A stretch of DNA of 64,000 bases from Zygnema circumcarinatum SAG 698-1b (Eukaryota; Plantae; Zygnematophyceae), in NCBI GenBank assembly GCA_037447605.1, contig CM074816.1, positions 511,873 through 575,872 on the forward strand, read 5' to 3'. Shown one piece after another: positions 9,101 through 15,586 of this stretch (positions within the stretch are counted from its first letter, which is position 1; the number at the start of each line of letters is the position of its first letter). The position numbers and the translations under genes were made by a program. The notes under the pieces were generated by a model. The model was given only the letters and a program-made list of their open reading frames with translations. It did not search any database and was not told the DNA's origin.

Positions 9101-11170
9101 GGAGTGTTTGGACAGGTCATCTTTGGAGGCAGATGGCGATGCCTTATTGGAGAGCAGCTGATGTGGCAGCGCATAGGGAGCACTGATGTGGCCTTTACAC
9201 CTGGCAGCTTCGGACAGGCTAACTATAAGGTAGGAGCACCTGCTACCCCTTACAACTAACACCTACCCTTCTTATGTTTAAGAGTGCTGGATATGTCAGT
9301 TTAGAGCAAATTTGAGTGAGACTGTGTCTATAGCTGAGCTGGCAACATTCGATTGGTGGATTTTCGCAGGCTTTTGAAGTCCTCCTTGCTCGTCTGCACC
9401 GGGCTGTGCCACGTGGCAGCTCCGTGACGGAGCTGTATGCAGGGACTGGTGTGATTGGTCTAACGTTGGCGGTATCTCGGAGCTGCAGGTGCACATACTT
9501 TCTCTGAAGTCATGCACTTGTTTTTTTGCAGCTGGAGTGTAAAGCTGGTTGAATTTTTTTAGTTTCGGTGGGATATGTAAAGCAGCGAAAAAAATTGAAA
9601 AAAAAAAAATATTGTGGTTGGAATTCAAAAATTATAGGTTGGTTGAAGAGTCAGGCAATGCTGATTCACTTAAACCCAGAGCGGTTCGCGACAAGAGGTT
9701 GGATGTGGATTGAAGAATTTTGGATGGAGTAGTGAACTGATTAGTCCTTGCCTCGTGGCATGCAGGCGTGTACGCTGTGTGGAGGTGAACAAAGCATGCA
9801 TGGCCCCCTTTGAACAGTCCCTGCAGCGCCTTCCATCCTATGCCGCATCCGTAGTATCATGGCATGGTGCTGATGCATCTACGGTGAGTCTCTCATGCAA
9901 TACACATGACATACATAGACGTGACACTTTCATGAAGCAAAAGCAGAAACACTGCAAATGGTCAACAAGGAGGAGGCTGAGGGGGAAATGGATTTGGCTT
10001 TTCGGGGTTATGCAGACGCCGATTAAGTGGCTGGAAGGTGCGGATGTGGTGGTGGTTGATCCACCACGGAAAGGGTTGGATCCACCTGTGGTTGATGCTT
10101 TGCGGTTGGCGGCTGTGAGGGGGGAGGGGAAAGTGAGACAACCTTCAGCAGCTGCAAAAGAGAGGTGGGGACTGCTCCAAAAACTGGTTAAGCTTATGTT
10201 TCTATTTAAACTGTCTACTCTTATGTTTATGCAAGTTGAATGGGGGTTGGAGGCCTTATAATGAGGAGGCGCATGCATCTGGAGTGGACAATGGAATTTT
10301 GGAGGGTTGGTGAGAGTGTGGTTGTTGTAGAGGCCTTGTGTAGACTGTTTTTATTTGTGTGGATTGGATGAAACAGGGCCGAAAAGAGGCCATGGCTGCT
10401 AAGGGCGGAGGCGAATAAGGTGGGCGGAGGCGTAGCTCATGAGGACGAGGATGACTATGACAGTGTATGGCCAAAGACATTGATCTATGTCAGCTGCGGC
10501 TGGGAAGCTTTCAAAGAGGTGCTTATCTATCTATGTCTACTACAGCAACCTTCATGAGCTAGACATGACTTCAATGTTATGTGTGCATCCTCACTGAATT
10601 CTGGTTATTTTTAAAATTGAATGATCGTAAACGCAAACATTTGTTGGACGGCAATTGGAAATGCTGCAAATACTGTAGATGTATTTGAATGGTCCACTTT
10701 AGTAAATGCAGCGGACCTCTTTACTAAATGTGCTAATGATTTACCATGACCGTATTTTGCATGACACCTCAGGACGCAATAGCACTGACCCGTGATGACG
10801 CGTGGCACCTCTCCAAGGTCTTAGCTGTTCAATTCTTTCCTGGAACAGACAGGTACTCTATTTCTTCATTTGCTCAGCACTCATAGAGTGGTGGAGAGGC
10901 AACTGAACTTAACTGCTCACTCTTGTTGATAGGAGAAGAGCGAGAGAGAGAGAGAGAGAGCGGAGAGAGCGTCTTTTCATGTTCTCTAAATGCAGCAGCC
11001 CTTCACAGCCCCTTGGTAAAGTGTCATCAGGTCACATGAACAATGGCTGAACTGACTCCTTCCCTATTGGGTGCAGTATTGAGACATTGGCTGTTTTCAA
11101 GCGCGGCAAGAAGCCTCGAGAAAAGAATAAGAAAGCGATTCCTGGGAAGGTGAGAAGAAAGTGGAATTGA
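6117..11170 (+). CDS. TrmA/RlmD-family RNA (uracil-5)-methyltransferase, plant At3g27180-like, with a long N-terminal extension
   Basis: Exon peptides GCEHFQ, WEWRCRAKLAVRG...IGLFNEGSHRVVDIPSCK, HHPMLN, LRYIQ, HSVWANFQT, ELYAGTGVIGL, VVVVDPPRKGLD, YVSCGWEAFK, FFPGTD and IETLAVFKR; stop TGA at 11168-11170. Confidence 0.88.
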
Positions 11171-11334
11171 GGGCAGCCCGGAAATAATTTGCGGAGGAAA
11201 GAAGCTTATTGTTATTGCAAGTGAAGGTAGAGGTGAAAGTCATCATGATGGAATCATACTCCTCACTGTGTCAAACAGTGGGCTATAATGTATAAAATAC
11301 CTTTTCCACTTCAAAATTCAAGTTATTCATCATA

Positions 11335-13110
11335 TCATGTATAGTGTGCTCCCATCTCCTCCCTTGCACTCTGTCTTTCTTCACCCCCATAGCTCCGCAT
11401 GATCCTCCCCACTCCCCTGAACTCCTTCCAGTAGTGAGAAGCAACCGCCCCCCCAGCGGCTGAGAGAAGGTCCACTTGAATGCCGTCATGGCCGTACTGT
11501 CTGCCTGAGCTGTGCACATACCGCACATGCGGAGAGCAGTCTCCGACCGAGCTGTGCGCATACTGAGAGCCCTCCCACCTTCCGCTGCTGCCGCTCCCTG
11601 CTCCCACTTCCGTTCCGTTCGCGTCCAAGGGTGCAGCGAGGGAGCATGCCTGCTTGTCCTCGTCGTATTCAGGAAGAGCATCAAGAGCTATTTCAGCCTT
11701 CTCTCCTGTGGGCCCGCGATCGAGGGCGACACAGAGCCCAACGTGAGTGGCTTTCTTGCCGCTTCCAAAGAAAATCTGCAAAGGCGGCAGTATTCGAAAG
11801 TCAGACTTGATGGTCCTTCAGTTGAAGGTTAGACAAGCTATGGCAGCACTTGCATCCCAGACAAGGTTTCCTCCTATGACTTCAGCTACTGACTCAACGA
11901 GCAGTTTCGAAGAAGTGAAGGCAGAGTCCTACCAGGTCGCCAGGTGCGATACATTCAAGCGGTACAGGGGAGGAAAAAGCTTCCTGGCGCAAAAACAGAG
12001 CAGCAAAATCACAAAGAATTTCAGTCAACAGCGTTGGGAGTAGAAATAGTAGAAGAGGCATGTTGAGAAAGGCTGAGACTGCTAAAGGCAGACGAAGAAG
12101 TCCAATTAGTATTTGAAGCCTCACCTGCTGGTAGGCATCACGAGGGATCCAAATGCCCTCTGAAGCAAAGGCACGCTGCACTGCACATTGGCAAAACACT
12201 GCTGAACCCCTCAGTACCACTGAAGAAAATGCTGTCGTCCATTTAGATTTGCCTTTCTACCACCACATGACAACTTTTTACTTTTTTCCTAATCCTTCAT
12301 ACCCAGTGGCACCTGGAATGCGCATGTGGAACATTTTTGCAAGCTATGTTATTGATTGCCCTTCCTAGACATGCCATTCACAAGCCTAAGTCCTTCACCA
12401 GGCAGCTTCATGCACTTTATGGCAAAAGGTTGGGGCGATTATCTCACCCAACCCGCTGCAGTCATAGTTTGGCCCTGCGGTGCCTCCCCACAAGTACTTG
12501 TTTGGAACTTCTCCAGCCGCCAAAGCAAAGGCAACAACACTGTTCAGCCTTTCTTCGATCTCCTGCCGAGGAAAAAACTTTGGATGGAAAGCCTCCAGTT
12601 CTGAAGACGGACGCAAGGCAGACATGTCGTTGGAAGAGAGCCATCCTCCATAGTCGTCCTCCAAAAGTTTAACAAAGACCGGTTCCCTGCAATGCCGTAG
12701 TGAGCAAGAAACTCCCTGAAACCACTCACAGAAGCCATGGGTTAATTGCTCAACGCACACTCCATGCACTAAACTTTACCGTCAAATGGTGCCTTAAGAA
12801 TGTCAATCACTTAAAACAGAAATTGCTTAGGTGGCTTAAAACGCGCCATGATTAGTTCCTCCTCTCTCCCCCCTCATCAATCCCAGTAAATTCCTCTCCG
12901 TATCTCCCCTCCCATCAAGCAAAGCAAAGAAAGCTCGCCCTCCCTCCGCCCCTACACCTCCCAGAGAGGTGCATACCCTCCTCCTTCAGCCCCGGCAGGC
13001 ACGGCGACGTGCCGGCCCGCCCAGGCCTCCGTGGCAAGGTCCGTGCACGCGGCTGAGTCGAAGAGCGGCAGAGCAGGCGCCATGACCACCCTCTCATCCG
13101 CCTCCGCCAT
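11335..13110 (-). CDS. Cyanobacterial-type SH3b + NlpC/P60 (C40) gamma-D-glutamyl-diamino acid endopeptidase homolog, 5 exons, 306 aa
   Basis: Exons 13110-12977, 12686-12448, 12180-12125, 11983-11933 and 11775-11335 (921 nt, all GT-AG, phases consistent). Peptides LPLFDSAACTDLATEAWAGRHV, LLEDDYGGWLS, YLWGGTAGPNYDCSGLVQRAFASEGIWIPRDAYQQEAF, PGDLIFFGSGKKATHVGL and YVHSSGRQYGHDGIQVDLLS...FRGVGRI align motif by motif with the Anabaena/Nostoc PCP enzymes as I recall them. Confidence 0.92.
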
Positions 13111-13551
13111 GGCTCCGCGGTCACTCCCTCGCCTCCCCCGCCCCTCCCTCTGGTATAACGACATAGGGGACACGTGGCGCAATTCCAGTGGACGAAGTGG
13201 TGCCTCTAGACAGGATCACAAGTGACGTACAGTAATTTGATTGGAAAAAATGTTGGTGTCTGTAGACAGAATGACACGGAAAGTAGTGCGCGTAAGGATA
13301 GCGTTAAACGCAGAATGTAACTTGGAGAAACACAGAGCGCCTGTCGACTGGCAATGAGTAAGTTGGAACGTTGGAACGTCGCCTGCTGCGATGGTGCAGC
13401 CCTAGGGCGAGGGCGGGAGGGAGGGAGAGAGCGAGTCGGGGGGAGGGGGAGGGAGAGGGAGAGGGAGAGGGAGAGGGAGAGGGAGAGGGAGAGGGAGGGC
13501 GAGAGAGAGGGGTAGGGCAGAGAGGAGGGAGGAGAGAGAGAGAGAGAGACC

Positions 13552-15586
13552 ATGGGCTCCTTCATAGGGCACATGTTACCCGGCTCACTGTTCTTCCTGA
13601 TCGGATTGTGGCACATATGGAGCAGCATTGTGAGCTTCGTCTCCAAGCCCCGCCTGTTCCGCTCGCGCGTGTGGCATCCATGCCGCCTGCCGGGGCCTCT
13701 GCGCTACCTCGAGCTGGTGCTGCTGGTTCTGGGAAGCTTTCTAGACATGGTTCCTGTGGAGCTGCTGGCTGGAACAAGTTTTCGGCCCATTGTCGATGGC
13801 GGAATTGCTCCCGGTCATTTAAACAACTTTGAGGTGCTCTCAGGAGGCAAGAGGTTCTGAAACTGGAGGGTGCTTTGCCGCTGCTTTTGTATCAATTACG
13901 TTGGACAACCTTCGGGGCATATTTTTTCGGGCTGGTCCATGGATTGTGAGAGTTTTTGGAGGCAATTTGTGTTCGCCTTTCAGCTGTGATAAAAGAAAAC
14001 GCATTTAGTGAGGCAAAAACGAGCTATCACAGAGGGACGATTGACTCTCTGCTCAATCTTGCTTTGGTGCTGCAGCATGCGTCGATGCTGCTCCTTTTCT
14101 TCCTTTTCGGTCTGACAGTACTCATTAGTGAAACCACAAGGTACAAACCTTGGCTCTTGCATATAAGTGTATTGCAGTTTTGTATTCTCTAGAGTTGTTT
14201 GATTTAACCGCTTGTTTCGTCCCTTACTCTTAGGATGTCATTAGTGGCCAAGGAAGAAGAGAGAAAGAGAGTCTAAAGCTCAGCTTATCTATTGCACACT
14301 TTCTGAATCTTGGTAAGTGTTGTTACTTATCTCCCTATGTTACCGTTGAGCTATCTTGAGCTGAGTCTTTTGTAATTTGATTAAGGAGCATTTTAGGTGA
14401 ATTCGTTCCTTTTCAATTCCTTTGTACACAATATGCATGACATGACCAGTGGAGCTGAGCGCTAGTACAGGAAGCCTTCATACGGCTCGTATCAGAATGC
14501 AAGAAGCGAAGCACTAGAGTCCTCGCAAGAGTAATGCATACGTCATTGTGCAAGTGCCAATTTTGAACCATATTCTTTTTTGTTGTGTCTTTTCTCTGCA
14601 CTTTGCCCTCTCTGGACCTCAATAGTCTCCTGCCTCTACCGGAAGGAGCCCTGCACGTCGTGGCTGCAGCAGCATTCTCTGGAGAGTTCGTTCTCTTCTT
14701 CTTTCACTCGACGAACCACACTGGACTGGAAGCAAGATACCATACTCTGCTCTCTCTAGAGATTGCCCTCTGCATGCTTCTCGCATGCCTCTGTGCCGCC
14801 TATCCCCACAGTTTCCTTCTGGACCTCATGGGTGCGGTCGCTGTGACTCTTCAGGGCTTATGGTTCTTTCAGGCAAGCGATACATTTCTTTCCCTTTTTT
14901 CCTTGGCAGTATGTATGCCAAAGTTATGCCCACCCTGCTATCGTGGGATATAACATACTGTCAGGAATTTAATGTTTGGTGTTAATCTCTACATTACCAT
15001 TAGCATTATGGTTTGCTTGTTCAGATTCTTCATTTTATTGACTGAAATAGACCCTGGAGTAATGCTTAGGTATTTCGGAGTGTTATCAGCCAGTGCATGT
15101 ATCTGAACCCTTTCCATGCTTGTGGATTTGGTGCTGTAACCGGTTCTATCTCATGGAATATCCTGCTTGAAGATTGACTGCTGATTTTTGTCCATTTTCC
15201 GGTTCCTGTTGCTGCAGACTGCCTTCTCTCTCTATGGCTCCCTGCTGCCCACGGGATGCCACGTGAAACCCGAAGGAGTGTTCTGTGACCCAAAGTATGA
15301 AATGCGGGCCACAGGGATGGCCACTCTCCTCTTCACTGCTCACATTGCTGCTCTCATTGTCCTCGTCCTCGCTCTCTACGCCCTGGCAGTGCGCATTTGG
15401 GGCTCGGCGGAGTTGTGGGATCTTGTGGCTGCTGGAGACTACCAAGTCATAGAGAGAGAGAGAGGGGAGGGAGGCAGCGACCTCCCCTACGAGTTGAAAG
15501 TGATGGCCATGGAGGAGGAGGACGTGCCTGTGCCTCTCAGCATGCACGGAGCGCACAAGCCCAACGGAATTTTTGGCTCAAGATGA
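13552..15586 (+). CDS. TMEM45/DUF716 family membrane protein, 4 exons
   Basis: MGSFIGHMLPGSLFFLIGLWH start, NNFE|HASM, FFFHSTNHTGLEARYH and LQGLWFFQ|TAFSLY; the last intron has a GC donor at 14873. Confidence 0.9.

Follow-up and report, generated by a model that had tools for sequence, protein, structure and literature searches.

A nuclear, spliced gene of the streptophyte alga Zygnema circumcarinatum encodes a predicted cyanobacterial-type murein-peptide amidase with an expanded catalytic hairpin

A 64,000-nt stretch of the genome of Zygnema circumcarinatum SAG 698-1b (assembly GCA_037447605.1, contig CM074816.1, positions 511,873 to 575,872; referred to below as the window, its first letter being position 1) carries on the minus strand, at 13110..11335, a gene for a predicted NlpC/P60 cysteine peptidase of cyanobacterial type. 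Five exons are joined to an open reading frame (ORF) of 921 nt encoding 306 amino acids, and all four introns are of the GT-AG type. This structure had been proposed, with its coordinates, in an earlier sequence-only reading of the locus and agrees with our gene model and with splice joints in RNA contigs, which were assembled from four publicly available runs of this organism. Contigs from the four runs contained joints at exactly the four modelled introns, which demonstrates that the gene is real, spliced and expressed. Exon 1 (12977..13110), delimited by a donor joint at 12976/12977 in the RNA contigs, begins with the start codon and encodes half of an SH3b domain, namely its first half (residues 1-45, the last codon being split). 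Exon 2 (12448..12686), defined by gene model, RNA and alignment, encodes the second half of SH3b, a linker and the start of the NlpC/P60 domain up to the motif DCSGL. Exon 3 (12125..12180) has the same three lines of evidence, and exon 4 (11933..11983, EAFSSPVPLECIAPGDL) is based on gene model and RNA. Exon 5 (11335..11775) encodes the two catalytic histidines with an insert between them as well as the C-terminal strands, and ends with the stop codon at 11335-11337; it is contiguous in the contigs of all four runs, with RNA coverage unbroken over 11074-11775. All exons lie on the minus strand.

An alternative acceptor of intron 1 at position 12715 extends exon 2 by 29 nt (12687..12715, minus strand; joint 12714/12976 in runs X2 and X3). 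According to the translation, this shifts the reading frame and leads to a truncated product of 101 amino acids. The alternative joint was minor in run X2. Such unproductive splicing may serve to regulate the peptidase gene. No second copy of the gene was found within the 64-kb window. The spliced protein itself was absent from both protein collections searched, suggesting that the gene is unannotated or that the genome was left out of them. The acceptor at 12715, a 65-residue insert and homologues in other green algae, both described below, are features that go beyond the sequence-only reading.

The predicted protein consists of one SH3b domain and one NlpC/P60 cysteine peptidase domain. The motifs noticed in the sequence-only reading were all present, namely the SH3b string LPLFDS..C..LATE...GRH...LEDDYGGWLS and an intact catalytic triad of Cys121 (DCSG; codon 12458-12460, minus strand), His171 (ATHVG; codon 11743-11745, minus strand) and His248 (YVHSS; codon 11512-11514, minus strand), which aligns with the triad of cyanobacterial homologues. 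From these intact residues the enzyme is predicted to be catalytically competent. In a Pfam scan of the exon pieces, SH3_16 (PF18348) matched twice, exon 1 covering its profile positions 1-23 (E = 6.5e-4) and exon 2 its positions 31-48 (E = 6e-3), and NLPC_P60 (PF00877) matched only a 17-residue piece of exon 2 (profile positions 3-19, E = 0.013). These matches are weak and piecemeal because the introns split the domains, the NlpC/P60 domain being spread over four exons. With BLASTP, residues 14-290 of the spliced protein aligned to cyanobacterial C40 family peptidases carrying PF00877 and PF18348 (E ~5e-59).

A profile built from the exon pieces and two algal homologues was used to search the solved structures. 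The closest entries were NpPCP of Nostoc punctiforme (2EVR/2FG0, E = 4.1e-60) and AvPCP of Anabaena variabilis (2HBW, E = 1.3e-59), in line with the cyanobacterial PCP type suggested earlier, and the alignment with NpPCP is colinear with the window protein. They were followed, in the range of ~1e-13 to 1e-11, by a bare NlpC/P60 domain (2e-13) and then by YkfC (3H41) and dipeptidyl-peptidase VI. In BcYkfC, the S1/S2 residues for L-Ala-gamma-D-Glu are Tyr226, Trp228, Asp237 and Ser239 (PMC2954226). Alignment with named cyanobacterial proteins placed their equivalents at Tyr109 and Trp111 (YLWGG) and Asp120 and Ser122 (DCS), which also match AvPCP. Recycling amidases are told from lysins by a Tyr64/Asp144 pair, lysins having Ala and Asn at these positions (PMC4600125). 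The recycling-type pair is present in the window protein as Tyr57 in the second half of SH3b (EDDYGGW; codon 12650-12652 in exon 2, minus strand) and Asp139 (PRDAYQQ), which in the alignment lies 18 residues past the cysteine, as in AvPCP. This full residue signature points to a stem-peptide recycling amidase rather than a wall-lytic enzyme. We therefore regard the protein as a putative PCP/YkfC-type murein-peptide amidase, i.e., a gamma-D-glutamyl-meso-diaminopimelate endopeptidase of MEROPS family C40, its substrate being predicted from these residues.

Comparison with known systems placed the protein more precisely. Like AvPCP and NpPCP, it has one N-terminal SH3b and a C-terminal NlpC/P60 domain, the Cys-His-His triad and no signal peptide, and its identity to the cyanobacterial PCPs is ~50% outside the insert. 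Unlike them, it is nuclear-encoded with four introns, its inter-histidine hairpin is 65 residues longer, its N-terminus is shorter and acidic, and its clade shows QRAF for QAAF, GHDGI for GRNGI and YGGW for YPGW. YkfC of Bacillus and Bacteroides and dipeptidyl-peptidase VI of B. sphaericus (3H41, 3PVQ, 3NPF) share the proposed function in murein-peptide recycling or catabolism, but have two SH3b domains, are in some cases secreted and are distant in sequence (E of 1e-11 to 1e-12 versus 1e-60 for the PCPs). MpaA of E. coli, a zinc gamma-D-Glu-meso-diaminopimelate amidase, is a functional analogue in that it is cytoplasmic and cleaves free murein tripeptide (PMC4600125); its fold is unrelated and its mechanism metallo-carboxypeptidase-like. 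The LysM-M23 proteins of the DipM/NlpD type in Cyanophora and moss are, like the window protein, bacterial-type wall enzymes kept in the nucleus of lineages with plastid peptidoglycan, but these M23-type metallopeptidases have LysM repeats, are directed to the envelope of the plastid and have as their target the polymer at the division site (PMC4015805), whereas the window protein has a free-stem-peptide signature and neither wall-binding repeats nor a leader. LytE/CwlS-like lysins have LysM or other wall-binding repeats and a groove open upstream; the Pfam scan of the exon pieces gave no LysM match, and the recycling Tyr/Asp pair is found instead. Judged from its sequence, the window protein thus belongs, by every defining feature tested, to the YkfC-type NlpC/P60 recycling amidases and, among these, to the single-SH3b PCP clade.

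The insert between the catalytic histidines (11527..11721, minus strand) comprises 65 acidic, Gly/Ser-rich residues (179-243) and was delimited by alignment. It increases the His-His spacing to 77. Of 134 bacterial proteins in which this spacing was measured, 131 have a value of 12 and three a value of 16. Among the eukaryotic homologues, the spacing according to the called models is 17 in Chlorokybus, 22 in the Tara Oceans protein A, 31 in Mesostigma, 46-54 in Closterium and 49 in Spirogloea, and it is 16 in the Tara Oceans protein B once its intron is removed. The hairpin is thus expanded in all eukaryotic members and in almost no bacterial ones, and most strongly in the window protein. The departure from the tight cyanobacterial spacing is a character of this clade and not one that defines the family. 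A cryptic intron inside the insert was considered and rejected, as no joint occurs within exon 5 in the four runs and the GC content at third codon positions equals that of the rest of the coding sequence. Length and sequence of the insert differ between lineages, which suggests that it is probably a tolerated, flexible surface loop. Its place in the strand pair with two triad residues may nevertheless allow a regulatory role.

To identify relatives, we exhaustively searched 1.84 billion cluster representatives with exon 2 using HMMER and obtained only 74 representatives at E <= 0.001. The named matches were cyanobacteria and green algae, the latter being Mesostigma viride, Spirogloea muscicola and four Closterium proteins; a Chlorokybus homologue was added by profile search. 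Two further clusters are located on Tara Oceans contigs, one of which also bears genes for a cytochrome-b5 desaturase, an HMG/DEK and a Myb protein and the other genes for proteasome, VPS35L, ubiquitin hydrolase and DXP synthase. These contigs represent compact genomes of plastid-bearing picoeukaryotes. When the prokaryotes were scanned for the family motifs with one genome per species (185,579 species), at least 593 relatives were recovered, and the best 80 of these were cyanobacterial but for two doubtful labels (one metagenome-assembled genome marked Poribacteria and one 'uncultured bacterium'). The named bacteria in two profile searches were likewise all cyanobacterial among the best 120 matches each. 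The matches listed included no homologue from land plants, red algae, glaucophytes or named core chlorophytes; as the profile searches covered the best 120 matches each, with some known members dropped, this does not by itself prove absence. The sequence-only reading had framed the enzyme with moss components in mind; this framing does not hold, since the host is a streptophyte alga and land-plant homologues are missing from the matches listed. A large land-plant family was also considered and rejected: the Atlas clusters near the Chlorokybus homologue (P0084) are bacterial throughout, mostly cyanobacterial, and no land plant occurs among the best 120 profile matches.

In an unrooted tree of 60 sequences calculated under LG+C20+F+G4, the seven green-lineage sequences were split from 53 of 53 bacterial ones with 95% ultrafast bootstrap support and 97% in the SH-like approximate likelihood ratio test (SH-aLRT). 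FastTree gave the same picture, as did a quick tree apart from the unstable position of Mesostigma. The eukaryotic clade has a long branch and substitutions of its own such as QRAF and GHDGI. Introns 2, 3 and 4 of the Zygnema gene, i.e., those flanking exons 3 and 4, are located at the same codon and in the same phase as in the gene of Closterium sp. NIES-68 (L086), with phase 1 for the intron after DCSGL and phase 0 for those after AYQQ/AFQQ and after GDL. Hairpin length and intron positions, both characters outside the tree, thus lead to the same eukaryotic grouping. The protein P0201 from a Tara Oceans picoeukaryote contig (L083, 8001-8744) was called through an intron after LPRD, which explains its long branch in the tree; its true C-terminal half, which includes THVG and YVHSS, is encoded in a different frame, and the intron position is unlike the streptophyte one. 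The simplest reading of these data is a single ancient acquisition from a cyanobacterium, after which the gene presumably gained introns and was passed on vertically. The endosymbiont origin proposed in the sequence-only reading fits insofar as no grouping of the protein with non-cyanobacterial bacteria was seen. Endosymbiotic gene transfer from the plastid ancestor is the economical reading, but an equally old free-living cyanobacterial donor would look alike and is not separable from it. As for the Closterium sp. NIES-68 homologue itself (L086, 3001-5430), it contains an Ala/Pro-rich insertion of ~100 residues inside SH3b, and its gene model has a 53-nt gap at residues 190/191 that is possibly no true intron.

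The protein starts with MAEADERVV right at the SH3b domain, as read earlier: only 12 residues precede the first conserved SH3b strand, fewer than in cyanobacteria, and six of the first 30 residues are acidic and one is basic. The proteins of Chlorokybus, Mesostigma and Tara Oceans B begin alike. Use of an in-frame ATG at 13164 would prepend 18 Arg/Gly-rich basic residues (MSLYQREGRGRRGSDRGA), in agreement with the earlier reading, but this codon (13162-13164) has a poor context and is located outside the RNA-covered region. RNA depth was zero over 13139-13472 in all four runs, and no splice joint leading upstream was present in their contigs. Just upstream of ATG 13164, a dyad search found CCACT-N9-CCACG, overlapping a CACGTG G-box (13173-13191, minus strand, 63-81 nt upstream of the start codon of the gene), which fits a transcription start downstream of 13164. 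A transit-peptide exon upstream, which the sequence-only reading had also not seen, was rejected as unsupported on the basis of zero RNA depth, the missing joint and a divergent neighbour whose ATG (13552) is 442 bp away. Judged from composition, length, comparison and RNA, the protein appears to have no N-terminal plastid-import leader, whereas the plastid-targeted peptidoglycan machinery has N-terminal transit peptides.

Taken together, the balance of the evidence tips towards an expressed nuclear PCP/YkfC-type amidase of cyanobacterial origin that would process stem peptides of the plastid wall in the cytosol. In this mechanism, SH3b would pack on the papain-like NlpC/P60 domain and shut the upstream end of the substrate groove, so that only glycan-free stem peptides, L-Ala-gamma-D-Glu-mDAP (mDAP, meso-diaminopimelate) with or without a terminal D-Ala, should fit. 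Cys121, His171 and His248 would cut the gamma-D-Glu-mDAP bond, yielding L-Ala-D-Glu and mDAP. Early in the evolution of the green lineage, a cyanobacterium, in the simplest case the plastid ancestor, would have donated the gene, which would then have acquired introns and been inherited vertically. The enzyme would most likely work in the cytosol, since an N-terminal import signal is missing, and degrade there stem peptides released by amidases from plastid peptidoglycan and, likewise, bacterial stem peptides reaching the cytosol. Enzymes with the recycling signature cleave gamma-D-Glu-mDAP in free stem peptides only (PMC4600125). The plastid peptidoglycan precursor of moss contains D,L-diaminopimelate (PMC9434261), and the substrate of the enzyme thus exists in plants. 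Streptophyte algae are reported to retain the peptidoglycan synthesis pathway (PMC7455551, PMC13519894). A further-reaching version, which we regard as tentative, is that green algae with plastid peptidoglycan retain some steps of cyanobacterial wall recycling and have shifted a portion of them to the cytosol: stem peptides would exit through the outer envelope and be cleaved by the leaderless PCP, with the insert acting as a regulatory or docking module.

Several observations weigh against cytosolic processing of plastid-wall stem peptides or against parts of it. The intron-1 joint recovered from run X3 was the frameshifting one only. The cyanobacterial backbone lacks resolution and the tree is unrooted, so that an endosymbiotic and another cyanobacterial origin are not distinguished. 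The insert is located in the hairpin bearing two triad residues and may affect catalysis. Contigs lose low-coverage ends, and the true 5' end may lie somewhat upstream of 13138. On sequence, internal or non-canonical targeting to the plastid or the intermembrane space may occur, and the cytoplasm of cyanobacteria, in which the ancestral enzyme resided, is equivalent to the stroma and not to the cytosol. A peptidoglycan pathway in the host genome is presumed from the literature on streptophyte algae. Finally, the predicted substrate, compartment and physiological role are deduced by comparison.

The question of the compartment leads to the alternative that the same enzyme acts on the same substrate inside the plastid, in the stroma or the intermembrane space, reached by means of a signal that is internal, very short or non-canonical, with recycling as in the ancestor. 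We consider this unlikely. The cyanobacterial homologues have no signal peptides (PMC2954226) and hence are cytoplasmic enzymes, which would correspond to a stromal location, and the product mDAP enters the plastidial synthesis of lysine (PMC9434261). Moreover, the Closterium homologue P0053 has ~20 Ser/Ala/Arg-containing residues before SH3b, and the unused ATG at 13164 would supply a basic Arg/Gly-rich 18-mer. On the other hand, even with this extension the fold would be preceded by only ~30 residues, RNA never reached 13164 and no upstream joint was seen in the four runs, and the acidic N-terminus with the domain starting 12 residues in is shared with Chlorokybus, Mesostigma and Tara Oceans B.

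If the enzyme is cytosolic, its main substrate might instead be foreign, i.e., muropeptides of associated or ingested bacteria, used for nutrition (D-Glu, diaminopimelate, nitrogen) or for signal shaping independently of the plastid wall. Algae are accompanied by dense bacterial consortia, and a leaderless, presumably cytosolic enzyme sits away from the plastid wall. Published recycling enzymes accept any diaminopimelate-type stem peptide with a free L-Ala (PMC4600125). This explanation appears quite improbable to us, because free stem peptides would require an uptake route to the cytosol and because of the distribution of the gene: eukaryotic members were found in streptophyte algae, which are reported to keep plastid peptidoglycan synthesis (PMC7455551), the picoeukaryote contigs may stem from peptidoglycan-keeping lineages as well, and land plants and named core chlorophytes were not seen among the matches listed.

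Re-use of the protein for another gamma-glutamyl or amide substrate unrelated to peptidoglycan, or for a non-catalytic role, would be marked by the hairpin insert. The expansion of the hairpin in every eukaryotic member, greatest in the window protein, and the long branch of the clade with its own substitutions (QRAF, GHDGI) would fit such a change. Retention of the triad and of all L-Ala/D-Glu contact residues over very long eukaryotic time and the variation of the insert between lineages, as expected for a tolerated loop, make this very improbable. That the locus entered the assembly as a bacterial contaminant or is a pseudogene in decay, for which one could cite the missing entry in the protein collections, is refuted by the spliced RNA contigs with four confirmed spliceosomal introns, by the intact ORF with all functional residues conserved, by three intron positions shared with Closterium and by eukaryotic genes on both sides with a shared promoter region and a 3' overlap, so that its probability is practically nil.

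The enzyme family and its chemistry were already known, and homologues are present in databases as hypothetical proteins. The distinguishing marks of the protein are the eukaryotic, nuclear, intron-bearing gene, the greatly expanded His-His hairpin and the trimmed N-terminus. In the literature searched, we found no description of an NlpC/P60 recycling enzyme in plastid-bearing eukaryotes; according to the DipM paper, cyanobacteria have no evident NlpC/P60 proteins of the LytE-like kind. The surveys and reviews of plastid peptidoglycan consulted cover the synthesis genes (MurA-G, MraY, PBP, DDL) and few polymer-cleaving hydrolases, and they do not mention turnover or recycling of stem peptides. 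The protein is a first candidate for an enzyme that breaks down fragments of the chloroplast wall layer. A conserved, expressed gene of cyanobacterial type with the signature for free stem peptides would imply that the plastid wall is turned over and its fragments are processed in these algae. With one protein it becomes testable whether plastid peptidoglycan is turned over and which compartment handles the fragments, and the gene can be followed through the green lineage by a clean marker, the shared hairpin expansion together with the three Closterium intron positions. If true, the further-reaching version would amount to an undescribed salvage route for muropeptides from organelle to cytosol. 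The significance of the gene is biological and not mechanistic, and the proposed biology is deduced from the evidence above.

The spliceosomal introns and the eukaryotic neighbours of the peptidase gene show that it is a nuclear gene, as had been assumed in the sequence-only reading. On the 3' side, a convergent gene (10375-11170, plus strand; introns 10517-10770 and 10850-11073, stop near 11170) overlaps with its last exon the 3' untranslated region of the peptidase gene, and as a consequence the unstranded RNA contigs fuse the two transcripts. On the 5' side, a spacer of 442 bp (13111..13551) is common to the peptidase gene and a head-to-head gene for a TMEM45/DUF716-like membrane protein with its ATG at 13552 (plus strand). 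Much of the spacer is filled by a (CT)n/(CCCTCT)n microsatellite (13403-13557), at which the RNA contigs break. The dyad at 13173-13191 is a one-mismatch copy of a CCAAT-N9-CCACG promoter dyad, which with at most one mismatch occurs 20 times in the window versus 3.06 times expected (largest shuffle, 8). A Pfam scan of eight large ORFs of the window yielded no family.

The TMEM45/DUF716-like gene spans 13552-15300 on the plus strand, with exons at 13552-13831, 14074-14138 and 14624-14869 according to RNA contigs. An Atlas look-up with its first exon returned 'Streptophyta, TMEM45-like'. Its contigs start at 13558, and its expression was far above that of the peptidase gene in the same runs. A further joint was observed at 14869/15215, with the non-canonical ends CA..TG.

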